Assembly (NCBI GenBank): GCA_002269645.1
Contig: NIVC01000714.1
Span: forward strand, 186,001-250,000
Direction of reading: 5' to 3'
From: Macrostomum lignano
Lineage: Eukaryota
Length of the DNA: 64,000 nt
Of the stretch, positions 13,241 through 44,338 are shown piece by piece. A program made the position numbers and the translations under genes. Within the stretch, counting starts at the first letter, position 1. Every line of letters starts with the position of its first letter. The notes beneath the pieces are model-generated. The model was not told where the DNA came from and ran no database searches. It saw nothing but the letters and a program-made list of their open reading frames with translations.

Positions 13241-15118
13241 CTGGGTGCATACTGGTGGTATCATCTCTCCATTTCCTCATCTTCTCCTAACTGCACTGAT
13301 CCACTGAAGGGCGGATTTCCTGAAAAAAAAACACTGCGGAGATAGAAATCAATGATTGCATTTGATTGAATTTTGCATCTGGGGCACTGAAGATTGCCAT
13401 TCTTTAAATTTAGCATGCACAGCATGTTACCCTGTTATCATTTATAAAGTTGCGCAGTGAAAGTTTTTTTTCACATGGTTATTTAATAAGCCCAAAGTAA
13501 AACCGCTCACAAGTAGCATGGACTGAAATTTTTGCTTCGTTACTTTTCTGAATAAAGCGTATTTCTATTAAATAACTAGGCTAGGCCTGGCTTGAAAGTT
13601 AATTGCTTTTTAAGACTAGGTCAACAGCAATATAAAGAATGATAGTTGGTACGATCTGGTCTGCAAACATTGTCTACATTTAATAATTATTTTGACAGGA
13701 ATTAGAATAGCCATTATTACTAACATGCGTTGAAATGAAACTATACCTACAATAATGACATAAGAGTCAAGTGTATTTTTCTCAGGAAATTGGCCTCCAA
13801 AAAACTACGCGATCTTTGAGTTTTAGGTCCTGTTATACTACAGTGATCCTTGATGACATGTTCGATTGAATGCGGAGCCTCGCAGATCTTGATCTTGATA
13901 CATCAATTGACGAGTTGGAGGAAAGTGTTTCCGAGTGTCGGTACCCGCAAGGACGACTAAAGTAGTCCTTGGGTACCCGACGTTACGGATCTGTACGATA
14001 ACTAATTGTTGCGATGACAGACAACCGACAGGCCGGCAACCGTCTGTGTTGCGATCAATTCCGTAGATGTAGCTGTCTCTGCGCCAGCGACCCAATCTGA
14101 ATGCCAGCTACTGCCTTCTGATTCATGATAAATTGCTCGAGATACGATTGCAACCATAGAAAAACCTTATTCACAGCACGCTTGGGCGTTTCCGTGTCTT
14201 TTTAATTTATTGGTGCACCTACGCCATGCCATGTAAGCTCTACTCTTGCAACTGATGCTTGTGAATCTTATGCTTTATAAACACCCTTTGTGATGTAATG
14301 GTGGCGCCATCGGTAATCGTTTGCTGTGTGCATGATAAGGGGCGTTACACAATGTTAAAGCTTCCTGAAACCTATCGGAGAAATTTTTATTGAGTGCGCT
14401 TCTTCGATTGGGCCATCTATTGGACAGGGGGGATTGCGGCCCCCTTGTCTCCTGGCTACGCCCTTGGTTGGCCCTCAGCTCGTGGGTTTGAAAAGTTCGA
14501 CAAGCTGATGTGGACACGCACGAAATCGAATTCAAGTATGCCCCTTGATCGGTGGTGCTTCATTTTAGTTGTTTTTGGGCCTGGAGTGTTTGTCTTCGCG
14601 CTTAGTCTCTACCGTAGCACCCATATAACTTCCGCATGGAGCCTCGCGCACGCAGTGACACACACACCTCCCACAATTCTTGCTATTTTTCTCCCAGACT
14701 AAATCGTTTAATCTGCAGCTAGAATTCCCCTACAAAGGGGAAGATTAGGTCTAAACCAAGGGCAACAGCTGCAAAGAAATGGAGCAGAGACAGTCCAACA
14801 GATTCGCAACCTATAACTGACCCCAGTTGAAACATTAGGTAAAACAATGACAAGTCAAGGAATGCACCAGGGACGAAATGCACACGTTGTTGAGTTTATA
14901 CTCACTGTTTTTGTACTGCTCCGCAACCTGACGCTCTGAGTCGTATTTTGCGCCCCATTCTCGGCTGGCCCTGAGGCAATCTGCATTGATTGATACAGGT
15001 TGAGTGGAGGTGGCAGTGAGTAGCAAATAACAATTAAACTGCCCTTGTTTTTTATAAACTTGCATACAGTCAACATTAACGTTGGATTTTAACTCCGACC
15101 CATGATTTGCTACGACTT

Positions 15119-16315: not shown

Positions 16316-16484
16316 CTTGATATTTGTTAACAATATCCCTGCTAAATAGTTCTTCTTCGTGTGATTTTCTCGTTATAGAATCAATATGAGACGTCTTTAC
16401 TTGATTTCTGTACGCCAGAAATGAGACGAGACAAAGAACTAGTACTGCAAATATGCCGATTTGTTTACTGTTTCCGGAGGTCAT
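16316..16484 (-). pseudogene. Possible first exon of a type II membrane protein, with downstream sequence broken by stops
   Basis: MTSGNSKQIGIFAVLVLCLVSFLAYRNQ...NKYQG followed by a donor-like AAG|GTAAAT. No intact continuation found. Confidence 0.25.
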
Positions 16485-19379: not shown

Positions 19380-20370
19380 CTGACATGACGCTTCTTTTGA
19401 TTTTTACGTTACGCTTCTTTTATTCTTCCATGATGCTTCTTAATTTTTTAAATGACACACTTTCATTAGTTTTTATATGAGGCTTCTATAATTTTTTCAT
19501 GACGCTTCTATGCTTGTTTACATGACGCTTGTATGATTTTTACATGACGCTTCTATGATTGTTTACATGACGCTTGTATGATTGTTTACATGACGCTTCT
19601 ATGATTTTTTACATGACGCTTTTATGATTTTTACATGACGCTTCTATGATTTTTTACATGACGCTTCTATGATTTTTACATGACGCTTCTATGATTTTTA
19701 CATGACGCTTCTATGATTTTTACATGACGCTTCTATGATTTTTACATGACGCTTCTATGATTGTTTACATGACGCTTCTATGATTGTTTACATGACGCTT
19801 CTATGATTGTTTACATGACGCTTCTATGATTTTTACATGACGCTTCTATGATTTTTACATGACGCTTCTATGATTTTTACATGACGCTTCTATGATTTTT
19901 ACATGACGCTTCTATGATTTTAACATGACGCTTCTATGATTTTTTTACATGACGCTTCTATGATTGTTTACATGACGCTTGTATGATTGTTTACATGACG
20001 CTTGTATGATTTTAACATGACACTTCTATGATTGTTTACATTACGCTTCTATGATTGCTTGCATGACGCTTCTATGATTTTTTATGACGCTTTTATGATT
20101 TTAACATGACGCTTCTATGATTTTTTTACATGACGCTTCTATGATTGTTTACATGATGCTTGTATGATTGTTTACATGACGCTTTTATGATTTTAACATG
20201 ACGCTTCTATGATTGTTTACATGACGCTTCTATGATTTTTACATGACGCTTCTATGATTTTTACATGACGCTTCTATGATTGTTTACATGACGCTTCTAT
20301 GATTGTTTACATGACGCTTCTATGATTGTTTACATGACGCTTGTATGATTGTTTACATGACGCTTCCATA
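19380..20370. repeat. 22-bp minisatellite (CATGACGCTTCTATGATTTTTA)n
   Basis: Directly visible, with degenerate copies at the left edge. Confidence 0.97.
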
Positions 20371-20419
20371 ATTTTTTTGTCTTGGCGTTAAAAGGCTTTA
20401 ATTAAAAAAGCTCTACTCT

Positions 20420-20769: not shown

Positions 20770-22860
20770 CGCAGTAATCCTTGGCTATCGAGTGCAGTAA
20801 TCCTTGGTTTATTAATAGCAATAATCCATGGCTTATCGAGTGCAGTAATCCTTGGTTTATTAATAGCAATAATCCTTGGCTTATCGAGTGCAGTAATTCA
20901 TGGTTTATTAATAGCAATAATCCTTGGCTTATCGAGTGCAGTAATCCTTGGTTTATTAATAGCAATAATCCATGCCTTATCGAGTGCAGTAATCCTTGGT
21001 TTGCCAAGAGCAATAGTCCTTGGCTTATCGAGTGCAGTAATCCTTGATTTGCCAAGAGCAATAGTCCTTGGTTTATTGAGTGCAGTAATCCTTGGTTTAT
21101 TAATAGCAATAGTCCTTGGTTTATTGAGTGCAGTAATCCTTGGTTTATTAATAGCAATAATCCTTGGCTTATCGAGTGCAGTAATCCTTGGTTTGCCAAG
21201 TGCATAATCCTTGGTTTATCGAGTGCAGTAATCCTTGGTTTATTAATAGCAATAATCCTTGGCTTATCGAGTGCAGTAATCCTTGGTTTATTAATAGCAA
21301 TAATCCATGGCTTATCGAGTGCAGTAATCCTTGGTTTGCCAAGAGCAATAGTCCTTGGCTTATCGAGTGCAGTAATCCTTGGTTTGCCAAGAGCAATAGT
21401 CCTTGGTTTATTGAGTGCAGTAATCCTTGGTTTATTAATAGCAATAGTCCTTGGTTTATTGAGTGCAGTAATCCTTGGTTTATTAATAGCAATAATCCTT
21501 GGCTTATCGAGTGCAGTAATCCTTGGTTTGCCAAGTGCATAATCCTTGGTTTATCGAGTGCAGTAATCCTTGGTTTATTAATAGCAATAATCCTTGGCTT
21601 ATCGAGTGCAGTAATCCTTGGTTTATTAATAGCAATAATCCATGGCTTATCGAGTGCAGTAATCCTTGGTTTGCCAAGAGCAATAGTCCTTGGCTTATCG
21701 AGTGCAGTAATCCTTGGTTTGCCAAGAGCAATAGTCCTTGGTTTATTGAGTGCAGTAATCCTTGGTTTATTAATAGCAATAGTCCTTGGTTTATTGAGTG
21801 CAGTAATCCTTGGTTTATTAATAGCAATAATCCTTGGCTTATCGAGTGCAGTAATCCTTGGTTTGCCAAGTGCATAATCCTTGGTTTATTAATAGCAATA
21901 ATCCTTGGCTTATCGAGTGCAGTAATCCTTGGTTTATTAATAGCAATAATCCTTGGTTTATCGAGTGCATTAATCCTTGGTTTATTAATAGCAATAATCC
22001 TTGGCTTATCGAGTGCAGTAATCCTTGGTTTATTAATAGCAATAATCCTTGGCTTATCGAGTGCAGTAATCCTTGGTTTGCCAAGAGCAATAGTCCTTGG
22101 TTTTTTGAGTGCAGTAATCCTTGGTTTATTAATAGCAATAGTCCTTGGTTTATTGAGTGCAGTAATGCTTGGTTTATTAATAGCAATAATCCTTGGCTTA
22201 TCGATTGCAGTAATCCTTGGTTTGCCAAGTGCATAATCCTTGGTTTATTAATAGCAATAATCCTTGGTTTATCGAGTGCAGTAATCCTTGGTTTATTAAT
22301 AGCAATAATCCATGGCTTATCGAGTGCAGTAATCCTTGGTTTGCCAAGAGCAATAGTCCTTGGCTTATCGAGTGCAGTAATCCTTGGTTTGCCAAGAGCA
22401 ATAGTCCTTGGTTTATTGAGTGCAGTAATCCTTGGTTTATTAATAGCAATAGTCATTGGCTTATCGAGTGCAGTAATCCTTGGTTTATTAATAGCAATAA
22501 TCCTTGGTTTATCGAGTGCAGTAATCCTTGGTTTATTAATAGCAATAATCCTTGGCTTATCGAGTGCAGTAATCCTTGGTTTATTAATAGCAATAATCCA
22601 TGGCTTATGAGTGCAGTAATCCTTGGTTTATTAATAGCAATAATCCTTGGCTTATCGAGTGCAGTAATTCATGGTTTATTAATAGCAATAATCCTTGGCT
22701 TATCGAGTGCAGTAATCCTTGGTTTATTAATAGCAATAATCCATGGCTTATCGAGTGCAGTAATCCTTGGTTTGCCAAGAGCAATAATCCTTGGCTTATC
22801 GAGTGCAGTATTCCTTGGTTTGCCAAGAGCAATAATCCTTAGCTTATCGAGTGCAGTAAT
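20770..22860. repeat. 24-bp satellite with variant monomers and a 335-bp higher-order repeat
   Basis: Monomers AATCCTTGGTTTATTAATAGCAAT, AATCCTTGGCTTATCGAGTGCAGT, AATCCTTGGTTTGCCAAGAGCAAT. Identical spurious ORFs at 21169..21540 and 21504..21875 are offset by 335 bp. Confidence 0.97.
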
Positions 22861-22929
22861 CTAAGTGTTTTTATTTAGTCCTTTAATAAAAGCTTTTAAT
22901 AAAAAATTTTACACTACTACTTTTAAACT

Positions 22930-22995: not shown

Positions 22996-24983
22996 CGAAG
23001 TTATCAGTGAATTTGTACCACTTATATAATTAATTCAACACTCACACCAAGTCAGGTAGAGTAAAAAGTCACGCGAAGCAGTTATGACATAATCAATTTC
23101 TTAGGCAAGTCAGTACCAGTGTCTATGAAAGTTAACAATATGGTTACGTAATATAAATTCAGTACTGCACTATACTTTCACCCTCAAAGCTGTGACGCAA
23201 TTCAATTGAGTGTCAAATTCAGCCAGTACACAGACGATAAATAAAGTGTATTGTGATGCAATCTATTTCAGAATCAGAATTCAACCAGTCAGATTTTTCT
23301 CTAGCATTCTTACAATGCATTTCAGGTCGAAAGAGCTGCTTGACCTTTGCAAAAAATCATGTTTTTCGAATATTTAATCCCTTTAACATTGAGCAATTTC
23401 TTAGCCAATATGCATGTACCGTCCCAGGAAAATTTCTGATCGAATGGTGCAAGTTTGAAGAAAATCGGTTGAGCCGTTCGGGAGAAAATCAATTACAAGC
23501 AAGCAACCAAGCATTTCATTTTTGGTATATTAGATTTATATCAGATATATTTTGATTGATCACTTTATGATTTTAAGTTCTATTCTATAATTTTAATAGG
23601 CCCTAGCCCTAGGCCTAGTTTTTACCTAAGTAATTTTGTTTTTATAATAATAATTAGACTAGGCTATAGCCTGTAACCTGTAGTAACCTGGTCTGGTCTT
23701 AGTGAATATAGGCCGACAGTTTTTCATTATTTATTAATATCTAATTTTATTAATCAAGTCTTAGACTTTAAAATTATAGGCCTAATAAGGCCTAAAAATA
23801 AAATAGCAAGCCTAGTGCATGCTGCATTTTCCTTAGAATCATAGTGCTATTTTAGCACCTATTTCTTTGGTTTATAATATTTGGTTAAAATTTTTTTTAT
23901 GTTTTTTGCAACATTATGCCTGGGTACTTAAAGATGGGCATAGGGTATAAGTAGTAGAGGATGTAAAATACAAGTAAAATGCCACACAAGCTGACACAGG
24001 ATAATAGTATTTAACCTAATATAGGATATTGCCAAATTGATAGTCTTGCAAGGCCTAAAATACCATATGAACTTTAGGTATATGCCAAATAGGGTATCCA
24101 AAGTTTTATGCATAATATATTGCTTGAAATTTGGCTTGCAATTGGACCATATGTCCTTAATGCTGTTTATATAAACTTTAACATCATTAAAATCTTATAT
24201 GTCCAACTTTTAGATTTTATCTAGGCCTAACTTATAAAAGAAATCCCAAAGCAAAAAATTAACATAATTTTGAGTAAACAGTGGGAGTAACTATGAATAT
24301 TATTAAGATTAATGACTTGTCATCTAATTAGTACTATGACTGTTTTGGGTTGGCATTTTTGCAACTTACCTTGGCTAGACCTCTTGCCACCTAGCTGAAT
24401 TAGTCAGGTCAGCCAAGTGATAGGCATGTGTGATTAGGATTGCAAAAATATAGTGAATGATTCATGGTTATATGAATGGTTAGTGCAATTTTGGATAGAT
24501 CAATATTACTAAGGTGCATATGATATGTAATATCGATATAAAAATAATAAAATGAAACTCAGTGGGGTACATATCCTGTGGACCCCCCCTTATATCTGCC
24601 ACTGCTTGAAGGTCATTTATTACAGGACAGAGAAGAGACTGCACCTCTAAATTGCCTCAGTGTATTAGAGGTTGGCACTATAGATGATATAATCCATGTA
24701 AGGTTGTAATAATTTTTGTATATAATAATTTTGAATTTCATTATTAAGTATTCATAAGTATTAGTTAAGTATCTAAACTAAAATTGCTAAAGATAATTTG
24801 TCTTCTACCATAATTAGCTTATTCCTTTAGATTTATAATTTATTTAAATTGAATTTCTTGATTTTCATTCAGTTGTAATTATAGCCTAATTGATGAAAAT
24901 TGATTTCTACCTGCAGGTTAAAACACATTCAAGTTAAATATTGAAATAATTTAAAACAAATACACATCTTTGCACAAAGAGCA

Positions 24984-27900
24984 ATGCTGTCAATGCATCG
25001 TTTTGCCTCCCTGGCATCCAATGGCATGCGTTTATCCCGCTGCCAACAGTTCCGCCAGCTCTCGTCAGCTCCCGATGCACATGCTGAGCCACCATTCTTT
25101 GAAATGGTTGAGAAATTCTTCGACAAAGCTGCCACCCTGCTGGAGCCGAAGCTCATCGATGAGCTGCCTGGCAAACTGCCTATGGAGGAGAGGACCAAAA
25201 AGGTTCGTGTTTTTTATTCCTATATTTACTACTCTTATTGAGACTTGATCGATTTGGAAGATTTAATTTGCACACTGATTCGATTTTTTCTTCCATTAAT
25301 CGTGTTTGCAATTTTTTATTTTGGGCCTACTAAATGCTTTTTTGATACTGTAGGAATGAGGTGTAGATTCCAAAGATGGGATTCTACATACCAAAGTTGG
25401 CATTTTCTTCCTAAAGATGGGATTTTGATCCCTTAGCTAGAAGTCTGATTGCGAAGATGGGATTTTGATTACAAAGAAGGGATTTGGATCTCAAAGATGG
25501 GAATTGGTCACAAAGATGGGATTTAGGTCCCAAAGATGGGATTTGGATCCCAAAGATGGGATTTAGGTCCCAAAGATGGGATTTAGATCCCCAATATGGG
25601 ATTTGGATCCCAAAGGTAGGATTTTAATCCCAAAGATGGGATTTGGATCCCCAAGAGGGGATTTAGATCCTTAGAATCAGATTTTGGTCTAAAATGGGAT
25701 TTCTATATCAAATATAAAATTTCAAATATGAAAATTTGATATTGCAAACAAGGTTTCGGCTCTGCAAATAATATTTAAAAAATACACCTACAGATGAGGT
25801 TTCAACCCAAACCCCATTAACTTCAGGTGCGTGGCATCCTAAGCATCGTGAAGCCGTGCAACCACGTCCTCGAGGTCACCTTCCCTATTCGTCGGGACGA
25901 CGGTCGCTTTGAAATCATTCGCGGCTGGCGGGCGCAGCACTCGCTGCACCGAACTCCGTGCAAAGGCGGCATTCGCTACGCCCCGGATGTCAACAAGAAC
26001 GAAGTCATGGCCCTGTCGGCCCTCATGACCTACAAGTGCGCCGTGGTGGACGTGCCCTTCGGGGGCGCCAAGGCCGGCTTGGCTGTCAATCCCAAGGAGT
26101 ACTCGGAGAACGAGCTGGAGAAGATCACTCGGCGATTCACCGTTGAGCTGGCTAAGAAGGGCTTTATTGGGCCGGGCGTTGACGTGCCCGCGCCGGACAT
26201 GGGCACCGGCGAGCGGGAAATGAGCTGGATTGCCGACACCTACGCTAATACTCACGGTGCGGCCTTGTGGGATTCTGGATTGGGGATGTGGGATTCTGGA
26301 TTGAGGATGTGGGATTCTGGATTGGGGATGTGGGATTCTGGATTATGGATGTGGGATTCTAGATTTGAGATGTGGGATTCTGAGTTGGGGATGTGGGATT
26401 CTGGATTGGGGATGTGGGATTCTGGATTGGGGATGTGGGATTCTGGATTATGGATGTGGGATTCTAGATTTGAGATGTGGGATTCTGAGTTGGGGATGTG
26501 GGATTCTGGATTGGGGATGTGGGATTCTGGATTGGGGATGTGGGATTCTGGATTGGGGATGTGGGATTCTGGATTGGGGATGTGGGATTCTGGATTATGG
26601 ATGTGGGATTCTAGATTTGAGATGTGGGATTCTGAGTTGGGGATGTGGGATTCTGGATTGGGGATGTGGGATTCTGGATTGGGGATGTGGGATTCTGGAT
26701 TGGGGATGTGGGATTCTGGATTATGGATGTGGGATTCTAGATTTGAGATGTGGGATTCTGAGTTGGGGATGTGGGATTCTGGATTGGGGATGTGGGATTC
26801 TGGATTGGGGATGTGGGATTCTGGATTATGGATGTGGGATTCTAGATTTGAGATGTGGGATTCTGAGTTGGGGATGTGGGATTCTGGATTGGGGATGTGG
26901 ATTCTGGATTGGGGATGTGGGATTCTAGATTTGGGATGTGGGATTCTGGATTGGGGATGTGGGATTCTGGATTGGGGATGTGGGATTCTAGATTTGGGAT
27001 GTGGAATTCTGGATTGGAGATGTGGGATTCTGGATTGGGGATGTGGGATTCTGGATTGGGGATGTGGGATTCTGGATTAGGGATGTGGGATTCTAGATTT
27101 GGGATGTGGAATTCTGGATTAGAGATGTGGGATTCTGGATTGGGGATGTGGGATTCTGGATTGGGGATGTGGGATTCTGAGTTGGGGATGTGGGATTCTG
27201 GATTGGGGATGTGGGATTCTGGATTGGGGATGTGGGATTCTGGATTATGGATGTGGGATTCTAGATTTGAGATGTGGGATTCTGAGTTGGGGATGTGGGA
27301 TTCTGGATTATGGATGTGGGATTCTAGATTTGAGATGTGGGATTCTGAGTTGGGGATGTGGGATTCTGGATTGGGGATGTGGGATTCTGGATTGGGGATG
27401 TGGGATTCTGGATTATGGATGTGGGATTCTAGATTTGAGATGTGGGATTCTGAGTTGGGGATGTGGGATTCTGGATTGGGGATGTGGGATTCTGGATTGG
27501 GGATGTGGGATTCTGGATTGGGGATGTGGGATTCTGGATTATGGATGTGGGATTCTAGATTTGAGATGTGGGATTCTGAGTTGGGGATGTGGGATTCTGG
27601 ATTGGGGATGTGGGATTCTGGATTGGGGATGTGGGATTCTGGATTGGGGATGTGGGATTCTGGATTTTGGATGTGGGATTCTAGATTTGAGATGTGGGAT
27701 TCTGAGTTGGGGATGTGGGATTCTGGATTGGGGATGTGGGATTCTGGATTGGGGATGTGGGATTCTAGATTTGGGATGTGGGATTCTGGATTGGGGATGT
27801 GGGATTCTGGATTGGGGATGTGGGATTCTAGATTTGGGATGTGGAATTCTAGATTGGAGATGTGGGATTCTGGATTGGGGATGTGGGATTCTGGATTGGG

Positions 27901-30900
27901 GATGTGGGATTCTGGATTAGGGATGTGGGATTCTAGATTTGGGATGTGGAATTCTGGATTAGAGATGTGGGATTCTGGATTGGGGATGTGGGATTCTGGA
28001 TTGGGGATGTGGGATTCTGGATTATGGATGTGGGATTCTAGATTTGAGATGTGGGATTCTGAGTTGGGGATGTGGGATTCTGGATTGGGGATGTGGGATT
28101 CTGGATTGGGGATGTGGGATTCTGGATTATGGATGTGGGATTCTAGATTTGAGATGTGGGATTCTGAGTTGGGGATGTGGGATTCTGGATTGGGGATGTG
28201 GGATTCTGGATTGGGGATGTGGGATTCTGGATTGGGGATGTGGGATTCTGGATTATGGATGTGGGATTCTAGATTTGAGATGTGGGATTCTGAGTTGGGG
28301 ATGTGGGATTCTGGATTGGGGATGTGGGATTCTGGATTGGGGATGTGGGATTCTGGATTGGGGATGTGGGATTCTGGATTATGGATGTGGGATTCTAGAT
28401 TTGAGATGTGGGATTCTGAGTTGGGGATGTGGGATTCTGGATTGGGGATGTGGGATTCTGGATTGGGGATGTGGGATTCTAGATTTGGGATGTGGGATTC
28501 TGGATTGGGGATGTGGGATTCTGGATTGGGGATGTGGGATTCTAGATTTGGGATGTGGAATTCTGGATTGGAGATGTGGGATTCTGGATTGGGGATGTGG
28601 GATTCTGGATTGGGGATGTGGGATTCTGGATTAGGGATGTGGGATTCTAGATTTGGGATGTGGAATTCTGGATTAGAGATGTGGGATTCTGGATTGGGGA
28701 TGTGGGATTCTGGATTGGGGATGTGGGATTCTGGATTGGGGATGTGGGATTCTAGATTTGAGATGTGGGATTCTAAATTGGGGATGTGGGATTCTAGATT
28801 GGGGATGTGGGATTCTGGATTGGGGATGTGGGATTCTGGATTGGGGATGTGGGATTCTGGATTGGGGATGTGGGATTCTGGATTATGGATGTGGGATTCT
28901 AGATTTGAGATGTGGGATTCTGAGTTGGGGATGTGGGATTCTGGATTGGGGATGTGGGATTCTGGATTGGGGATGTGGAATTCTGGATTGGAGATGTGGG
29001 ATTCTGGATTGGGGATGTGGGATTCTGGATTGGAGATGTGGGATTCTGGATTGGGGATGTGGGATTCTGGATTGGAGATGTGGGATTCTGGATTGGGGAT
29101 GTGGGATTCTAGATTTGAGATGTGGGATTCTGGTTTAGGATGTGTGATTCTGGTTTAGAATGTGGGATTCTGGATTAGGTTAAGATGGAGTTCTAAATGT
29201 CTATATTTTTGTCTTTCGAGTCGCATTCTCCATCCTAAATGTATTCAAAATTCCGATCGATTCTGCAGGCTTCAAAGACCTGGACGCGTACGCCTGCGTC
29301 ACTGGCAAGCCGATCGCCATGGGCGGCATTCACGGCCGCACCTCGGCCACTGGCCGGGTGAGTTTTCCTAGAAAACACTGTTTATTCCTTATTTTACTGG
29401 AGTGTTTAACACCCTTTATTAACAATGATAGCAAACGTAGCAGTCCATGAATTATTCCCACACCCAAGGTGGATTATCCTACATTCCTTATTATCCCATG
29501 TAGCTAATAATCCCACACCTTTTCATAATTCCTTAATACCAAAACACGTGGCCATCGCCAAACTGAAACGGCATTTCCCTCACCAGGGCGTGTTTCACGG
29601 CATCGAGAACTTCATCAACGAGGCCAGCTACATGAGCCAGGTGGGCCTCACGCCCGGCTTTGGCGACAAAACCTTCATTATCCAGGGCTTCGGCAACGTG
29701 GGCCTGCACTCCATGCGCTACCTGCACAGGGCCGGCGCCAAGTGCGTGGGCGTCATCGAGTTCGACGGAGCCATCCACAATCCTGACGGCATTGACCCCA
29801 AGGAGCTGGAGAACTACAAGATTGTGAGGCTGACTGACTGACTGACAGACACATAAACACACAGACACAGACACATATACATAGACATAATCACAGACAC
29901 ATATACATAGACATAATCACAGACACATAGACATAGACATAATCACAGACACATAGACATAGTCACAGACACATGGACATAGTCACAGACACATGGACAT
30001 AGTCACAGACACATGGACATAGTCATAGACACATGGACATAGTCACAGACACATGGACATAGTCACAGACACATGGACATAGTCACAGACACATGGACAT
30101 AGTCACAGACACATGGACATAGTCACAGACACATGGACATAGTCACAGACACATGGACATAGTCACAGACACATGGACATAGTCACAGACACATGGACAT
30201 AGTCACAGACACATGGACATAGTCACAGACACATGGACATAGTCACAGACACATGGACATAGTCACAGACACATGGACATAGTCACAGACACATGGACAT
30301 AGTCACAGACACATGGACATAGTCACAGACACATGGACATAGTCACAGACACATGGACATAGTCACAGACACATGGACATAGTCACAGACACATGGACAT
30401 AGTCACAGACACATGGACATAGTCACAGACACATGGACATAGTCACAGACACATGGACATAGTCACAGACACAGACACAGAAACACACAGACTCACCCAG
30501 TCCCCCGCCGGCCCGCAGGAGCATGGCACCATCGTGGGTTTCCCTGGAGCCAAAGCCTACGAACCCAAGGACGACCTGATGTTCGAGAAGTGCGACATCC
30601 TGGTGCCGGCCGCGTCAGAGAAGGCCATCAATCTGGGCAACGCGCACCGCATCCAAGCTCGCATCATCGCGGAGGGCGCCAACGGGCCAACCACGGGAGC
30701 GGCCGAGCAGATCCTGCGCGACAACAGCGTGCTGGTGATTCCCGACCTCTACCTGAACGCTGGCGGTGTCACCGTGTCCTACTTCGAATGGCTGAAGAAT
30801 CTCAACCACGTTAGCTACGGCCGGTTGACCTTCAAATACGAGCGCGACTCGAACTACCAGCTGCTGGAGAGCGTGCAGCAGTCGCTAGAGCGCAAGTTCG

Positions 30901-31142
30901 GCCGTCACGGCGGCAAGATCCCCGTGACGCCCACTAGCGACTACGAGGCCAGGATGGCCGGCGCCAATGAAAAGGACATTGTGCACTCTGGCCTAGCGTT
31001 CACTATGGAGAGATCGGCTACTAACATGATGCGCATTGGTATGAAGTACAATCTGGGGCTGGACCTGCGCACCGCAGCTTTTATCGGAGCCATTGAGAAG
31101 ATTTATCAGGTGTACCGCACCTCCGGCTTGCTGTTTATCTAA
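24984..31142 (+). CDS. GLUD1: Mitochondrial glutamate dehydrogenase (5 exons, 532 aa)
   Basis: Exons 24984-25202, 25827-26256, 29269-29357, 29587-29823, 30519-31142. GT-AG, phases match, 1599 nt. Motifs [71 protein letters not shown], preceded by an Arg/Ser-rich transit peptide. Confidence 0.97.
25370..25680. repeat. Degenerate 20-bp minisatellite in GDH intron 1 (GATGGGATTTGGATCCCAAA)
   Basis: About 14 imperfect copies visible. Confidence 0.85.
26266..29175. repeat. 21-bp satellite (GATGTGGGATTCTGGATTGGG)n filling GDH intron 2
   Basis: About 2.9 kb. It produces the (MWDSGLG)n and (CGILDWG)n spurious ORFs. Confidence 0.99.
29865..30475. repeat. 20-bp minisatellite (AGACACATGGACATAGTCAC)n in GDH intron 4
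   Basis: Highly homogeneous array. Confidence 0.98.
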
Positions 31143-31389
31143 AACTTGGCTAAATTTCAGTGTTTTTATTCATCCAAATTGCCTTTAGGATGCGTGTCAT
31201 TTTCAATTTATTTATTAGGTCCCTTTTGATTTCAGTAAACTCTGTGTGTTTGCTTCCTCTGCTTCTGTTGCAGATTATAGTAGTTTGTTGAAGGTCAAAC
31301 TGTGCACACAGTTCTATCTTTAAACTTTTTAAATCCAGCCGTAGAAATTCTTTTAATAATTGTCATATAGAGTATTCTTAGAGTCGCAA

Positions 31390-32150
31390 ATAAACCATTC
31401 TTAGAATTGCCACTAAACCGTTTCTAGGAACCGCTTCTAAACCATTTCTAAAAATTTCCACTTAAACCATTTCTTAGAAACCCCACTAAATCGTTTCTAA
31501 GAATCGCCACTAAATCGTTTCTTAGAATCGCCACTCAACCATTTCTAAGAATCGCCACTGAATCGTTTCTTAGAATCGCCACTAAATCGTTTCTTAGAAT
31601 CGCCACCTAATCGTTTCTTAGAATCGCCACTTAATCGTTTCTTAGAATCGCCACTTAATCGTTTCTTAGAATCGTCACTTAATCGTTTCTTAGAATCGCC
31701 ACTTAATCGTTTCTTAGAATCGCCACTTAATCGTTTCTTAGAATCGCCACTTAATCGTTTCTTAGAATCGTCACTAAACCATTTCTAAGAATCACCACTA
31801 AATCGTTTCTTAGAATCGCCACTAAACATTTTTTAGAATCGCCACTAAATCGTTTCTTAGAATCGTCACCTAAACGTTTCTTAGAATCGCCACTAAAAAT
31901 TTTTTTAGAATCGCCACTAAATCGTTTCTTAGAATCGTCACTCATTCGTTTCTTAGAATCGTCACTCAATCGTTTCTTAGAATCGCCACCTAATCGTTTC
32001 GTAGAATCGCCACCCAATCGTTTCTTAGAATCGTCACTCAATCGTTTCTTAGAATCGTCACTCAATCGTTTCTTAGAATCGTCACTAAATCGTTTCTTAG
32101 AACCGCTTCTACACAATTCTAAAAATCGTCACTAAACCATTTCTAAGAAC
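31390..32150. repeat. 24-bp minisatellite (AATCGTTTCTTAGAATCGCCACT[A/T])n
   Basis: Directly visible downstream of the GDH stop. Confidence 0.96.
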
Positions 32151-32952
32151 TTTCACTGGTTTAAAACGTCAGAGAATTGTCTTCCAGTTCAGATTTTAAG
32201 CCACATAAACTGTTCACCATAGTTTCAGTACAATAGCATTGTATAATTATAGAATTAAAATAAATTAATAACTTGTAGTGATTGCCGATTAACCAACAGT
32301 TGTTTTCAAACCTAATTAAAGTTATGCTTTGTTTTATACACCTTTTGGAAGTTATTGCCTTAGTTTGCTACGTAATGCCGAGTCTGATTCTGATTTTTTT
32401 CAAATTAAGCTTATAAGTAGTTAGGCAGATGTCTTCTATTCGCTTATTTACCTTGGTTAATTATGCGTAAATGTTTTTACAAGTTTCTAGCATTGATTTT
32501 TATATTCTAGAAGCAAAATCACTCAATTTTTCTGTAATGGGTAAAATTGATATTAAAATAATGCATATTCTAAACACACAAGAATCTTTGTGACGCACTT
32601 AAACAATTGAAAACTGTTTAGAATATGTATTTATCATTTTATTTAATGCGCTTCTTTGCGATTGGAATTTATTCATATTGTAGCTTGCATCCAACAGCAA
32701 AGTGTGTGATGATTTTATTGTACTAGCGAGATCGGCCGCTCGTCTTTGTCCTTCTTCTGCTTTTCATTGGCTAAATTTATCATTATAGCTGAACGTCTTT
32801 TTTTCAAACAAAATCAAGAACTAACGATCTTATATTTCTGTTCTAATCATTGTGTCTTCTGCTTTTTTATCAGAAAAATTTGGCCAGAATTGCTTGAAAA
32901 GTGGGAAATGATATTCGATAATAAATCAAAAGCGTTGTCGTACAACTTTCAG

Positions 32953-33438
32953 CAGCAGGCGTCGAATCGTTCTCTGTTGCTATGGCGACGCCTCACTAGC
33001 GTTGCCGCGCCGCGCCTGCCATTCAGCGTGGATTCTAGGGCCGGGCAGCAGCCGCCGCCGCCTCGTCGCACCCGCGTCCTGTACGACGGCGGCTGCCCGC
33101 TGTGCAGCCGCGAGGTGGCGCTGGTGCGCAAAGCCAACGGCCTGCGTAGCGGCGAATTGACATTCGAATTCTGCGACATCACCAAGCCGGAGCAGTTCGA
33201 CCCGGTCTCCGCAGAGCACGGTATCTCGCGTGAGCAGGCCATGTCGCAGCTGCACGTCATCGGGCAGGACGGCCGGATCTACCGCGGCGTCGAGGCGTTT
33301 CGCAGGATGTACTCGGACGCCGGCTGGGACGGCCTGGTTGAGATGACGAAGATTCCCTCTGTTAACCGGCTTCTGACCAGCAGCTACGCTTGGTTTGCTA
33401 AGCACAGGACTAAACTGCAGAGTCTGGGCCAGGATTAG
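32953..33438 (+). CDS. DCC1-like thiol-disulfide oxidoreductase (DUF393); start codon uncertain
   Basis: VLYDGGCPLCSREV (DxxCxxC), MSQLHVI...G.IYRGVEAFRRMY, and Y.WFAKHR. The GC-rich coding block starts at a TTTCAG acceptor (32947-32952). An alternative in-frame genomic ATG lies at 32908. Confidence 0.88.
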   Translation, partial: QQASNRSLLLWRRLTSVAAPRLPFSVDSRAGQQPPPPRRTRVLYDGGCPLCSREVALVRKANGLRSGELTFEFCDITKPEQFDPVSAEHGISREQAMSQLHVIGQDGRIYRGVEAFRRMYSDAGWDGLVEMTKIPSVNRLLTSSYAWFAKHRTKLQSLGQD

Positions 33439-33949
33439 GCCTGATAATTCATATTGGGTGCAAATTATTTTATTTGGCCTGCATGTACACTGCTTGAACT
33501 TTGTGGTGCACATTTGCCTGGCTAGCCAAGGTACATCAATTAAAGTACATTAGTCTGGCTAGCCAATGTACATCAGTTAAAGTACATTAGTCTAGCTAGC
33601 CAGTGTACATCAATTAGTGTACATGCGCATTCGTGAGTATTTGATTTTCACAAATGGAACTGACGCTTTAATGTGCACCGACTGTTAGCGAGTAAAGCGT
33701 TGCTATTTTGTCTTCTTCAATTTTACCAATAGTTCTGAATGTCAAATATGATTTATTACTATGGTTTAGTGTGTCTTCAGTTTCTAGAGAGTAATTGCGT
33801 CCTTGCCCTCGTTGTTTTCGGTTTATACTTGGAGTAGTTGAGCAGTGAGTACAATGTTTAATTTTTTATATCAATATAAACCGAAATTACGAAAAATTTG
33901 AAACGTAGCAGATCGTCTGAACATTTTTGGTTGGATTTTATTTTTATAT

Positions 33950-34390
33950 ACTGTCGCTATGGTGTTGCTGTGCTGTTGCTATGGTGTTTCTATGATTTTG
34001 CTTTGGTGTTACTGTGCTGTTGCTATGGTGTCGCTGCGCTGTTGCTATGCTGTTACCATGGTTTAGCTGTGCTGTTAATATGGTGTCGCTATGTTGTTGC
34101 TATGGTGTTTCTATGCTGTTGCTAAGATGTTTCTATGCTGTTGCTATTCTGTTTCTATGCTTGCTGTTTCTATGGTGTCGCTATATTGTTGCTATGGTGT
34201 TTCTATGCTGTTGCTATGGTGTTGCTATGGTGTTGCTGTGCTGTTGCTATTCTGTTTCTATGCTGCTGCTATGGTGTCGCTATGTTGTTGCTATGGTGTT
34301 TCTGTGCTGTTGGTATTCTGTTTCTATGCTGTTGCTATGGTGTTTCTATGCTGTTGCTATGGTGTTTATGTGCCGTTGCTATGGTGATTT
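33950..34390. repeat. Minisatellite of 11/22 bp (TGTTGCTATGGTGTTTCTATGC)
   Basis: Explains the Cys/Leu-rich spurious ORFs between DCC1-like and NDUFB7. Confidence 0.93.
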
Positions 34391-34466
34391 CAACGCCGTT
34401 TCAATGCTCTGGTGTGGTCTTATAGAACTTTAAGGAGGTTCCCAACCTACTGTAATTGCAGCCACA

Positions 34467-34859
34467 ATGGGCCAGGCTCTGGTGCCGGACCGGCTGAAGC
34501 ACATGCACGACATGTACCTGAACCCGGATGCGGCCCCGGATTTAATCAAAGGCTCGCGCTTCGACCCGCTGCTGGGCTTCCCGAACGGTCGCAAGGAGCG
34601 GCCGATGCCGCCAATCACGGAGGACGAGATGATCATGGCCGGCCTGCCCGAGCAACAGCGCGACTACTGCGCCCACTGGTACCTGGCCTTCTTCAAATGC
34701 CGCTACCAGTACAAGGCGCGCTCCTTCTGGAAGTGCGCCGACGTGCTGCACGGCGTTGAACAGTGCCAGTACGACGATCGGGTGCTGCGGATGAAGGAGC
34801 ACGAGCGGGAGCGGCGCCTGATGCTGCGCCAGGCCAAGGGTCAGCTTGAACTGGAGTGA
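34467..34859 (+). CDS. NDUFB7: NADH dehydrogenase (ubiquinone) 1 beta subcomplex subunit 7 (B18), intronless, 130 aa
   Basis: MG start (myristoylation-type), FDPLLGFPNGRKERPM, RDYCAH, twin CX9C (CAHWYLAFFKC, CADVLHGVEQC), YDDRVLRMKEHERERRL. Confidence 0.95.
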   Translation: MGQALVPDRLKHMHDMYLNPDAAPDLIKGSRFDPLLGFPNGRKERPMPPITEDEMIMAGLPEQQRDYCAHWYLAFFKCRYQYKARSFWKCADVLHGVEQCQYDDRVLRMKEHERERRLMLRQAKGQLELE

Positions 34860-36566
34860 ATCCGCGAATGCAACTATAAATAATATCACTTCAACACTTG
34901 ATACTACTCACTTGTCGTTCGAGCATCAGTAGTGCATAGTCTGTGTGTCTAAGCTGGAAAAATACCCCCCCCCTTGTAATCCCCTGTGAGTGAGAAACGT
35001 GAGACACTTAGAAATTTAAATAAATATTTCATATAGTTAGTCTAACACTGTCTTAGCCGTTTTATCGTAATGCAAACGACTCGTATTCTTGCGAATTCGT
35101 TTATTTGTATTTCTATATCTAACAGATTATCACTAGTATCTAACATCTTACAGTAGCGTCCGTATCGAACACACGAGACTCAGAAGGGTAAAGGGTAAAA
35201 AACAAAAAGTTCGGCTAATGCCACTTGTGAGCATTTTGCAACTCGGGGCTTATGAAATAAAAAGAAAATAATATGAAGATGAAACTTCCATACACAACTA
35301 TATTAAAATATAATAGAGTAACATGTTGTGCGTGCTAGATAAAAAGAATGGTTATCTTAGCTGCCTTAGATCAAATGCAATCTTTGATTTTGTGATGAAA
35401 AAATTATTTTTTCCTATATCCGCAGTGTATTTTTTCCAGGAAATCGTCCTAAAAATTTACACGATCTTTGAGTTTTACGTCCTGCTAGTCTAGAAGTCCT
35501 TGATCAAAAGATTGTCCATCACATGACCTTGAGCTTCGTTTATGTCGAAACAAATTTAGAGAATAACGCAAGCACAAAAAATTGAGAATATCAAATTGCA
35601 ATTGGTTCTGCTTTTAAACCGTTATATTCTTCTGCAATTGAGAACTGGGCATGCAAAGACGGAAACAGTTGAAACTGTGGACTATAAATTGTGTACGGTC
35701 GTGTTAAATTACAACAGAGATTACTTGTCTCCAGAGAATTCAAGCTATACTCAAAATCGTCAAAGCTTGAAAATTTTATCGGCGACTGAATGTACATGTA
35801 GGTGATGCATCGCTGAAAATACTACTGCTTATACTGACTGTCGGGATAGATTTTATTGTGAGCGATCAACGTTTTAAACAGTTTGGTTGACTGCACTCAA
35901 TCCTGATTCAGTTTGCATTCAAGACTTAAGCTAGTATTAATAAATCAATGATTATCTAAAAAATATCGCCGACGAAATCGACTTATTGAACTTTTTTAGA
36001 ATAAATTAGCCTGGAAGTCTTCAACATGAAAAACTCTTAATTGACGCTTGCAGCACCAGAATGAAAGTAGTATAATCAGGTAATCTAGCGTTTTTTTTAG
36101 AAATTCTACTACCCGTTAGATTATTAGTAATGAGTGCTAAAATTGATTACTTCGCAGGCAAATCAAATATGTTGTACTTTACGTAGCCCTATGCAGTCAG
36201 GACTTTTACATTTCACAGTTTGTGGAATTAGGACTTTAGCATTCTTAATTAATCTAGATCATGGGTAGGAACTTTTCCTTGAAAGTCTATCCCAATGCCC
36301 CCTATGAAGGTGACGTAGCCTTGAAGGGCTAAATTGGGTGGAATCTCGACGTGGCTCTGCTAGTGCAATTAACGCATTTGAGGATTGTCTCCTGTGTGAC
36401 TGTGTGCCTGTGCGCATGACTGCTCAGGGAAGTCGGCTGAATGGGTAGTAATGCGTCTCTCGCCGGTTGTGTGACAATGTCGCTTAAAGTGCACCCTAGC
36501 CCTACCTCTAGTTCAAAACTTTTAACCAGTATCTCACTAGCCCGCGAGTACTCATGGCTACTCAGA

Positions 36567-38598
36567 TCACACCACGGTCGGCTTGCGGTACAGATGCTCG
36601 TGTGAGAAGTCCCTGTCGACCGAGTGGCCATCCTCCGTCGACCGATCCGGCAGCGTGGCGTCGCTGAGCCACTTCAGGAAAGTTTCTTTCACGACCTCGG
36701 CTGTCACAATGTCGCCAGAGTTCTTATTGACCACAGACAGCATGAAGTGACCGTCGGTGCGCAGAAAATCGCTGACAAATTTGGGCTCGTGTTCCCGGAT
36801 CCGCTGGAACCGTTCGGTTGGTTTCGGGTTCATGTCGAGGTTCTCGGCGATCTTCAGGTACTTCTTGATGGCTCGGTGCCGGCTCGGGCTGAGCAGCAGC
36901 TGCAGCAGCCAGCGGCTGGCGGACACGACGCTGAGGGTCAGCAGGATGACCACCCAGAACCAGATTGCAATGTAGAACTTCTCGTTCAGCATGTTGACGG
37001 GCAGCACGCACTGCAGGGTGTACTGCCGGGGCTCCCCAACACTCCTAGTCTCGAACTGGCAGTAGGTGACCCTGGGGAACACGTTGCTGCTCTGCCAAGT
37101 GCGGTTGTTGGCGATGTCGCTAAGAATCTGCAGCCCGAACGAGGTGATGTTGAGCCCCAGGAAGCTGCGCATGAGGTACAGCTGACCGATGCAGTTGGCC
37201 ACGTAGCAGGACTTTACGAAGATGTAGGTGAACGCGAAGTACATCGAGAAAGCTGGCTTGCCGGATAGGAACGAAGCGAAACGTTTGCAGCAATCTTTGT
37301 GTCTGTAGCGGCTCCTGTACCGAGTGAACTTGAGCAGCGAGTCTGAGACGAAAGCGATTTTTTTCTGCCTCTCGTCCGGCCCCGAGCTGTCAGCCTCAAT
37401 GTTGCGAGCCTGCAGTGCCAGTTGGCGCATGTCAATGCCGACATTCGTGCTGAGCAGTAGCCAGATGAGATGCGGCACGTAAAACAGAGCCGCCTGCGCC
37501 ATCAGGATGAATGGCACCCACTGGTAGTAGTCTGTGCGGCGTGTTGCAATTGGATTTGTTTTTGGTTATTGTCGTACATTTCTAGATCTCACGGAGACAC
37601 ATGGTGAGTTTGTTAGTGTTTGGGGGATAAGAAATTAGGGGTTTGGGGAAGTTTGGAGAGTAGGAAAGGAAGGAAAGGAAAGTGGGGGTAGGAAAGTGCG
37701 CTTTTCAGGGGTTAGGAAGGTGGGGTTTTCAAGGGGTTGGAAAGTGGGGTTTTCAAGGGGTAGGAAACTGGGGTATTGAGGTGTAGGAAAGTGCGGTTTT
37801 CAGGGGTTAGGAAGTTGGGATTTTCAAGGGGTTGGAAAGTGGGGTTTTCAAGGGGTAGGAAACTGGGGTATTGAGGTGTAGGAAAGTGCGGTTTTCAGGG
37901 GTTAGGAAGTTGGAGCTTTCAAGGGGTTGGAAAGTGGGGTTTTCAAGGGGTAGGAAACTGGGGTATTGAGGGGTAGGAAAGTGCGGTTTTCAGGGGTTAG
38001 GAAGTTGGGATTTTCAAGGGGTTGGAAAGTGGGGTTTTCAAGGGGTAGGAAACTGGGGTATTGAGGGGTAGGAAAGTGCGGTTTTCAGGGGTTAGGAAGT
38101 TGGGATTTTCAAGGGGTTGGAAAGTGGGGTTTTCAAGGGGTAGGAAACTGGGGTATTGAGGGGTAGGAAAGTGCGGTTTTCAGGGGTTAGGAAGTTGGAG
38201 CTTTCAAGGGGTTGGAAAGTGGGGTTTTCAGAGGGTAGGAACTTTTGGCTAATTTAAGTTACCAAAGAAAGTACACACAATTAGGGCAGCTCACATATGG
38301 TTCGGCCTTCGCCAGGATTTTTGCCGTGATGAATTGGCACAGTTGGGTCGTAATAAAATGTGTTCTCCACCCAGCAGTAGTTCTCCGCGTACTCCATTCT
38401 GTCGTTGTCCAGTTCTTTGAGATTCCAGCACTGGATGGGCTCGAAGACGTACTGCTTCATGCCGACCACGGTGGCAATTGCAAGCAACAGGGCTGGGGTG
38501 ACCACGTAGTTGAGCCGGTCGAAGTAATCTTCGGCACCTTTGGGAGTAGCCTTGGCTGATCCCGCCAGCTTGCGAAAGCTGTCGATGTAGCCGTCCAT
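36567..38598 (-). CDS. Innexin (2 exons, 422 aa)
   Basis: Exons 38598-38295 and 37531-36567 join in phase to give IYYYQWVPFILMAQAALFYVP. Also EPIQCW, YAENYCWVENT, FPRVTYC and CVLPVNMLNEKFYIAIWFW. Confidence 0.97.
37670..38240. repeat. G-rich minisatellite (about 21-22-bp monomers with higher-order period) in the innexin intron
   Basis: Recurrent GGGGTTAGGAAGTTGGG, GGGGTTGGAAAGTGGGG and GGGGTAGGAAACTGGGG blocks. Confidence 0.93.
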
Positions 38599-43585: not shown

Positions 43586-44338
43586 CGCAGAGCAGCGCAG
43601 CAAGAGTGCAGCAGATGTGCATGCAATAGCAAACAGTCGATAAGCGCTTAGCCTAAAACCCTTGGGGCTCGGCCTCTCTTTTTCTCAGAAAATAAAATGG
43701 TCTGAGATGTCGCATTGACGGTCCCAGACTCTCAGCATTGGCAAAAAGACGCACACAATGCTTGGGACATATCCTGTATATCCTTAATCCCTTTTTCGTC
43801 TCTTCCCCCACAGAGTGGTCAGCAGTTCAAGAAGGCTCAGTGGCTCACTCCCCCCCTTCTGGCCTGAGAAGCCAGGACCAGCTCAGAGCGATCTCGCTTC
43901 CGTCCCCCAATTTTTCCCTCTGTATGCCGAACTGAATAGTCATAGTTACTGGGAGTCCGATTTCTGGGGCGTTTTGGTGTGTCTGGGCAGGGAGTTCTAC
44001 AGCGAAACAGCCCCCTCAGAAATCAGTTACCAATCCAGATATCTATAGCTTGTGGCGTCCCTGGCAGTGCAGAGTGCGGGCGGCAGCGGCTTTGCTGCCA
44101 ATGAAGAAGTTTTCAGCAAAATCCTCAATCGATCGAAGAGCCACAAAAATTAGTCAATCCCCTATTTTGAGGCGTTCCCCCAATTCTGCCTCTTCCATAA
44201 CCCTAACGGAGTGTAGCAGCCCCGGCCGAAGCTGCAGAAATCTCCAAGTCTGCTTAATCCGAGGCGGATTAAGTCGGGCACGTTGCCAGGAGGAGGGGGT
44301 GCAAAGAAGGGCCGCCTCCCCAATAGGCTGGCAAAAAT

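Follow-up and report, generated by a model that had tools for sequence, protein, structure and literature searches.

A stretch of 64,000 nucleotides from contig NIVC01000714.1 of the flatworm Macrostomum lignano (assembly GCA_002269645.1, positions 186,001 to 250,000; hereafter the window, in whose own numbering coordinates are given) carries at 24900-34859 a cluster of exactly three genes on the + strand that is likely to be a spliced-leader (SL) trans-spliced operon: GDH (24984-31142), a gene for a DCC1-like thiol-disulfide oxidoreductase (32953-33438) and, as a probable member, NDUFB7 (34467-34859), which encodes the B18 subunit of complex I. An earlier reading of the window from its letters alone (the sequence-only reading) had pointed to these three co-oriented genes, which exon models and Pfam matches now confirm, and the mechanism that it invoked, flatworm SL trans-splicing that resolves a polycistronic transcript, fits the locus. 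M. lignano has a single SL of 35 nt, CGGTCTCTTACTGCGAAGACTCAATTTATTGCATG, which ends in AUG; the acceptor motif enriched at its target sites is YTNCAG, SL trans-splicing affects about 30% of genes, and operons hold about 15% (PMC8629364). The operons and transcriptional units of this animal have been catalogued genome-wide (Wudarski et al. 2017, PMC5730564; Ustyantsev & Berezikov 2021, PMC8629364), and both the phenomenon and most of the present instance are on record in published papers and in GenBank; a start codon that the SL may donate to the DCC1-like mRNA and scars that polishing may have left in the assembly are our small additions.

The evidence is most direct for GDH and the DCC1-like gene, and it draws on paralogous copies of the cluster. 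Three contigs of GCA_002269645.1 carry an NDUFB7 gene, whose protein of 130 amino acids (aa) is identical in all of them, and the whole cluster recurs in two more near-identical copies, on NIVC01000529.1 (L004) and NIVC01002256.1 (L006), as is consistent with the known duplication of the M. lignano genome (PMC8629364). The copies are 93-98% identical to one another, and their GDH exons 97-100%. By exact-sequence look-up, GDH on L006 is PAA59502.1 (BOX15_Mlig028097g1) and the DCC1-like protein is PAA59503.1 (BOX15_Mlig028097g2, labelled “partial”). Transcriptional units defined by RNA-seq were divided into genes solely where experiments had mapped SL and polyadenylation [poly(A)] peaks, and about 7% of the units are multi-gene precursors (PMC5730564); the shared Mlig028097 tag, with its suffixes g1 and g2, therefore identifies GDH and DCC1-like as genes 1 and 2 of a single RNA-defined transcriptional unit. 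The copy on L004 adds an annotated isoform in which the two are fused. It uses a cryptic splice donor, CAG/GTGTAC (31110-31115, + strand), 10 codons ahead of the GDH stop; a predicted splice from 31109/31110 to 32952/32953 gives 522+161 = 683 aa, an exact match to PAA81445.1 (BOX15_Mlig011448g1). Given such a GDH::DCC1-like isoform, the precursor must extend from GDH into DCC1-like. Public annotation, re-derived here, thus shows that the two genes share one transcriptional unit, and the GenBank partial coding sequence (CDS) together with the g2 tag provides strong but indirect evidence that the 5′ end of the DCC1-like mRNA lies at its acceptor.

That acceptor, ACTTTCAG (32945-32952, + strand), is followed by two further in-frame CAGs that reach to 32958. 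Putative SL acceptors for the other genes, also on the + strand, are CTACCTGCAG (24907-24916), with an exon start at 24917 and, after the putative trans-splicing, a 5′ untranslated region (UTR) of 67 nt in GDH (24917-24983), and AATTGCAG (34454-34461), with an exon start at 34462, which leaves 5 nt ahead of the NDUFB7 ATG. The YTNCAG cores are CTGCAG (24911, GDH), TTTCAG (32947, DCC1-like) and TTGCAG (34456, NDUFB7). At a density of 2.5 per kb on the + strand the motif is by itself not significant; what makes these acceptors convincing is that each is the sole YTNCAG within the last 90-290 nt ahead of its CDS, that GC content rises sharply across the junction (from 0.31 to 0.70 at DCC1-like and from 0.43 to 0.65 at NDUFB7), and that the GenBank CDS of DCC1-like starts exactly at its acceptor. 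The tandem, NAGNAG-type CAGs at DCC1-like offer three junctions (32952|3, 32955|6 and 32958|9), and the 5′-partial CDS in GenBank begins at 32956 in the window (160 aa), and in L006 it begins at the position that corresponds to 32953 (161 aa, PAA59503.1), a difference between copies which suggests that these may be alternative trans-splice sites of the NAGNAG type. The sequence-only reading had placed the acceptors of DCC1-like (32952) and NDUFB7 (34461) correctly and that of GDH one base off, the exon starting at 24917 and not at 24918. Its description of the acceptors as unpaired holds for the gap between GDH and DCC1-like (gap 1), which has no GTRAG donor; it has to be qualified for the gap between DCC1-like and NDUFB7 (gap 2), where two donor-like GTGAGT sites, at 33633 and 33845 (within 33633-33850, + strand), are kept in all copies, and for GDH, where GTAAG stands at 24698, 219 nt upstream of the acceptor.

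The DCC1-like gene appears to borrow its start codon from the SL. In all three copies the first in-frame methionine of its reading frame is residue 97, inside the domain (residues 42-156), and the sole other early AUG belongs to an out-of-frame open reading frame (ORF) of 5 codons. Positions 32953, 32956 and 32959 are all first positions of codons, so that the terminal AUG of the SL is in frame with each junction and would give proteins of 162, 161 and 160 aa. Joined at 32953, the SL AUG reads MQQASNRSLLLWRRL... (162 aa), and the resulting N-terminus, MQQASNRSLLLWRRLTSVAAPRLPF..., is arginine-rich and free of acidic residues, a composition that suggests a presequence of the mitochondrial type. 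The lack of a genomic AUG and the agreement in frame with the terminal AUG of the SL together argue that the SL supplies the start codon, and we predict that this AUG is used for translation. We favor, with some reserve, the stronger proposal that the gene itself lacks a start codon, that no protein can arise from it except through trans-spliced mRNA and the SL AUG, and that the tandem CAGs are tolerated because all of them keep the frame. Neither the DCC1-like sequence with an added initial methionine nor a version starting from an upstream ATG (MIFDNK...) had an exact-sequence match in the protein collection. At GDH the same AUG would open an upstream ORF (uORF) of 7 codons. The label “mitochondrial”, which the sequence-only reading had given to all three genes, holds firmly for GDH and NDUFB7; with DCC1-like the presequence-like N-terminus is all that speaks for it. 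If the proposal is right, a particular redox protein, probably a mitochondrial one, cannot be expressed without trans-splicing in a flatworm amenable to transgenesis, and a GenBank protein called partial can be complete once the SL AUG is counted.

NDUFB7 is probably part of the same transcript. Its link to the cluster comes from its orientation, from a repeat-adjusted gap of about 470 bp, from the YTNCAG placed 5 nt before its ATG and from an SL-like scar in L006. In that copy, inside 96 nt that are otherwise identical to the window, the NDUFB7 acceptor reads ctgtattgcatg/ccaca in place of ctgtaattgcag/ccaca (gtattgcatg for gtaattgcag), and the TATTGCATG that stands there equals the final 9 nt of the SL. 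The GDH acceptor of L006 is altered as well, from cctgcag/gtt to cctgatg/gtt, the ATG being the final 3 nt of the SL. The two scar sites lie at ~1420-1426 and ~9988-9996 of L006, equivalent to 24914-24916 and 34453-34461 of the window; on contig NIVC01002256.1 they fall near positions 13880 and 22450. As the M. lignano assembly was Pilon-polished with RNA-seq plus DNA reads (PMC5730564), the scars are best read as leakage of SL-bearing RNA-seq reads into the consensus at these junctions, which is probably what they are; on that reading they would point to SL addition at both the GDH and the NDUFB7 sites. Within the window TTGCATG occurs at chance frequency (11 observed, 13 expected). A search of L006 for analogous poly(A) scars, A-runs at cleavage sites, found none, and no further scar was seen at the 5′ end of the neighboring innexin gene. 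The full SL is absent from the window at up to 3 mismatches, and the window therefore holds no SL RNA gene. One stretch of 9 nt, TATTGCATG, at 43618-43626 on the - strand, does agree with the SL 3′ end; it is identical in L006 and adjoins no annotated gene, and it could be fortuitous or mark where an unannotated trans-spliced RNA begins, uninformative for the operon in either case. Co-transcription of all three genes, as the sequence-only reading had it, is thus supported for GDH and DCC1-like by the g1/g2 tags, the CDS start at the acceptor and the 683-aa isoform; the membership of NDUFB7, like the trans-splicing of GDH and NDUFB7, has indirect support from distance, motif and the L006 scars. 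Should the scars be what they seem, RNA-seq polishing can overwrite splice acceptors with SL sequence, so that acceptors in the reference are corrupted at some trans-splice sites, and the SL scars form a record of such sites that can be mined.

The spacers between the genes are long in the raw sequence and much shorter once satellites are set aside. Gap 1 measures 1810 bp in the window, 775 bp of it (43%) tandem repeat, and gap 2 measures 1023 bp, with 552 bp (54%) in repeats; the sequence-only reading had given about 1.8 and 1.0 kb, and its roughly 40% satellite compares with 47% for the two gaps together. The repeat of gap 1 is a 24-bp satellite of about 32 copies (31375-32149, + strand), whose array spans 775, 775 and 1087 bp across the copies of the cluster; raw lengths of this gap are 1805, 1810 and 2116 bp and repeat-adjusted lengths, counted from the GDH stop codon, 1030, 1035 and 1029 bp. 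Counted from AATAAA at 31389-31394 (+ strand), the likely poly(A) signal of GDH, which lies 247 nt past the stop and is kept in all three copies, the adjusted gap is about 800 bp. Gap 2 contains a 37-bp repeat (33510-33624, + strand; 3 copies in the window, 600-640 bp or about 17 copies in the other two) and an 11-bp (22-bp) satellite (33947-34383, + strand) that stops 78 nt upstream of the NDUFB7 acceptor. Its raw length is 1593, 1023 and 1489 bp in the three copies of the cluster and its repeat-adjusted length 445, 471 and 469 bp; the satellite content varies about two-fold (552 bp in the window, 1148 and 1020 bp in the other two), and the unique sequence stays constant at 445-471 bp. Published assignments of M. 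lignano operons call for co-oriented genes at a repeat-adjusted distance below 1 kb, measured between transcripts, and the same study explicitly reports that repeats lengthen operon spacers (PMC8629364). The genes of the cluster are co-oriented neighbors with no annotated opposite-strand gene in between, and gap 2 lies below 1 kb in all three copies. The locus can serve as a worked example of how satellite expansion masks short operon spacers.

We posit that a single RNA polymerase II promoter upstream of GDH, within the 8.5-kb gene-free stretch that follows 16484, would drive a precursor through GDH, DCC1-like and, probably, NDUFB7. This precursor would be cut by 3′ end formation after each cistron (at GDH, directed by the AATAAA at 31389), and the 35-nt SL would be added at the YTNCAG acceptors, at 24916/24917, at 32952/32953 or 32955/32956, and at 34461/34462. 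The SL would supply the start codon of DCC1-like, and the spacers would look long only through satellite expansion.

Several observations weigh against an operon. The RNA evidence is second-hand where it comes from the annotation and interpretive where it comes from the scars, and the changes in L006 could instead be real mutations. Gap 1 is borderline for the 1-kb limit, passing when counted from the 3′ end of GDH and not when counted from its stop codon, and the repeat-adjusted gaps (~800-1030 and ~470 bp) are far above the published mode of about 100 bp. The 3′ signal of DCC1-like is weak: the sole ATTAAA of gap 2, at 33539 within the 37-bp repeat, is present in the window copy only, the other two reading AGTTAAA. 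At NDUFB7 an SL AUG would open an out-of-frame uORF of 12 codons that begins 8 nt before the real AUG and overlaps the gene. Synteny, which the sequence-only reading had proposed as a check, went against the operon in Schistosoma japonicum, where the 10 kb around NDUFB7 hold no GDH or DCC1-like gene. Some of these points would suit trans-splicing without an operon, in which each gene, or NDUFB7 by itself, has its own promoter in the gap and the SL trims a monocistronic outron. Of the trans-spliced genes in M. lignano, about 40% have been placed in operons and about 60% are monocistronic (PMC8629364); the adjusted gaps have room for a promoter, the poly(A) signal of DCC1-like is, as said, poor, and the shared tag concerns GDH and DCC1-like, leaving NDUFB7 to be linked by its position and sequence. 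A separate promoter for DCC1-like is, however, contradicted by the shared unit tag and by the isoform spliced from the last GDH exon, and for NDUFB7 the published distance limit is respected in three of three copies. We regard independent transcription as unlikely.

Conventional expression of GDH, of NDUFB7 or of both is less probable still, and we give it little credence. It would take a cis-spliced 5′ UTR exon ending at 24697 for GDH and at 33632 or 33844 for NDUFB7, and the donor-like sites noted above, GTAAG at 24698 and GTGAGT at 33633 and 33845, leave room for such leader exons; the caveat of the sequence-only reading that cis-spliced 5′ UTR exons are possible stands for these two genes, and 18% of M. 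lignano operons begin with a gene that is not trans-spliced (PMC8629364). Yet the altered acceptors of L006 match the 3′ end of the SL (ATG and TATTGCATG) rather than the sequences in which the putative cis exons would end (...CCAT, ...CATTC and ...GAGCA), and GTRAG occurs in gap 2 at about chance frequency; that the two GTGAGT sites are kept in all copies is uninformative either way among sequences 93-98% identical. Hardly credible is the remaining proposal, that GDH and DCC1-like are one gene, with DCC1-like an alternative 3′ exon and the 683-aa fusion annotated on NIVC01000529.1 the real product. PAA81445.1 is indeed annotated as a fusion with an in-frame junction, but a junction falls in frame by chance 1 time in 3, the donor GTGTAC is weak, and in the other two copies the annotation keeps GDH and DCC1-like apart. 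The fusion also deletes the last 10 residues of GDH, which we take to match the conserved C-terminus of animal GDH, and the presequence-like N-terminus of DCC1-like makes sense only when free.

An SL trans-spliced operon thus remains the preferred reading, and the other searches made around it gave little that bears on it. When the DCC1-like and NDUFB7 proteins served as queries, no transcript contig from M. lignano or any Macrostomum came up, and the supplements of M. lignano papers, searched for the locus tags and for NDUFB7, yielded only the GDH fusion entry. Among the nearest NDUFB7 homologues, in Logan/JGI contigs (L009-L014) from unrelated AT-rich organisms, there was no SL and no DCC1-like neighbor. 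One homologue, at 53% identity, is found in two sequencing runs (L009, SRR25253476_623, and L011, SRR8046345_43782) whose sequences directly upstream of the ATG differ; the cause may be the use of alternative 5′ exons or chimeric assembly.

The gene models themselves are straightforward. GDH has 5 exons (24984-25202, 25827-26256, 29269-29357, 29587-29823 and 30519-31142, + strand) that encode 532 aa with the Pfam domains ELFV_dehydrog_N and ELFV_dehydrog, and the modeled protein is identical in sequence to GenBank BOX15_Mlig013285g1. Three of its four introns carry short-unit satellites, at 25366-25670, 26266-29176 and 29931-30473 of the window: 15 units of 20 bp in intron 1, 139 units of 21 bp (2.9 kb) in intron 2, and 27 units of 20 bp, 99% identical, in intron 4; the arrays differ in length among the three copies of the cluster. 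The single-exon ORF of DCC1-like matches PF04134 (E 3e-22), and the single exon of NDUFB7 matches PF05676 (E 2e-18) and encodes a protein with a twin Cx9C motif and an N-terminal MG, in a strong AUG context (acaATGG). AATAAA at 35019-35024 (+ strand) is the likely poly(A) signal of NDUFB7 and would mark the end of the cluster. Both flanking genes are on the - strand, the upstream one, divergent from GDH, ending at 16484 and the downstream one, the innexin, at 36567-38598. Between 16484 and 24900 lie 8.5 kb without annotated genes, with 23-bp and 48-bp satellites at 20000-20377 and 20771-22861. Rfam gave no match in the 64-kb window.

The cluster has its closest counterparts in the other operons of M. 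lignano, with which it shares the organism and assembly, co-oriented genes, the single 35-nt SL, the YTNCAG acceptor and repeat-inflated spacers, as well as a three-gene size that is common (18% of operons; PMC8629364). It differs from them in nothing of kind; its spacers (~470 and 800-1030 bp) fall in the long tail of the distribution and not at the 100-bp mode. The start codon proposed for DCC1-like has a precedent in another flatworm: use of the SL AUG as initiator, in what are called slORFs, was shown experimentally in Schistosoma mansoni, according to the citation of Cheng et al. (2006, J Biol Chem 281:733) in PMC9851317. As far as that account goes, the likeness lies in an SL that ends in AUG, an acceptor in frame and the absence of a genomic AUG upstream of the conserved domain, an absence that makes the SL AUG necessary for a full-length protein here; the case is experimental in S. 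mansoni and read from sequence in a free-living macrostomid, where, in contrast to the slORFs as described, three tandem CAG acceptors all preserve the frame and GenBank labels the product “partial”. The SL2-type operons of Caenorhabditis elegans offer a more distant comparison. In M. lignano there is a single SL class, with no specialized SL2 (PMC8629364), and the spacers of the present cluster, 1810 and 1023 bp raw with satellites inside, depart from the ~100 nt typical of SL2 operons. Alike in both, for the present cluster as proposed, is a polycistronic precursor that SL trans-splicing, coupled to the formation of 3′ ends, separates into mRNAs. Operons of C. elegans are also said, as Blumenthal and Gleason reportedly described in 2003, to be enriched for mitochondrial and housekeeping genes, and the gene content of the GDH/DCC1-like/NDUFB7 cluster is similar: the proposed joint expression of three genes that are mitochondrial, or putatively so, recalls that enrichment.

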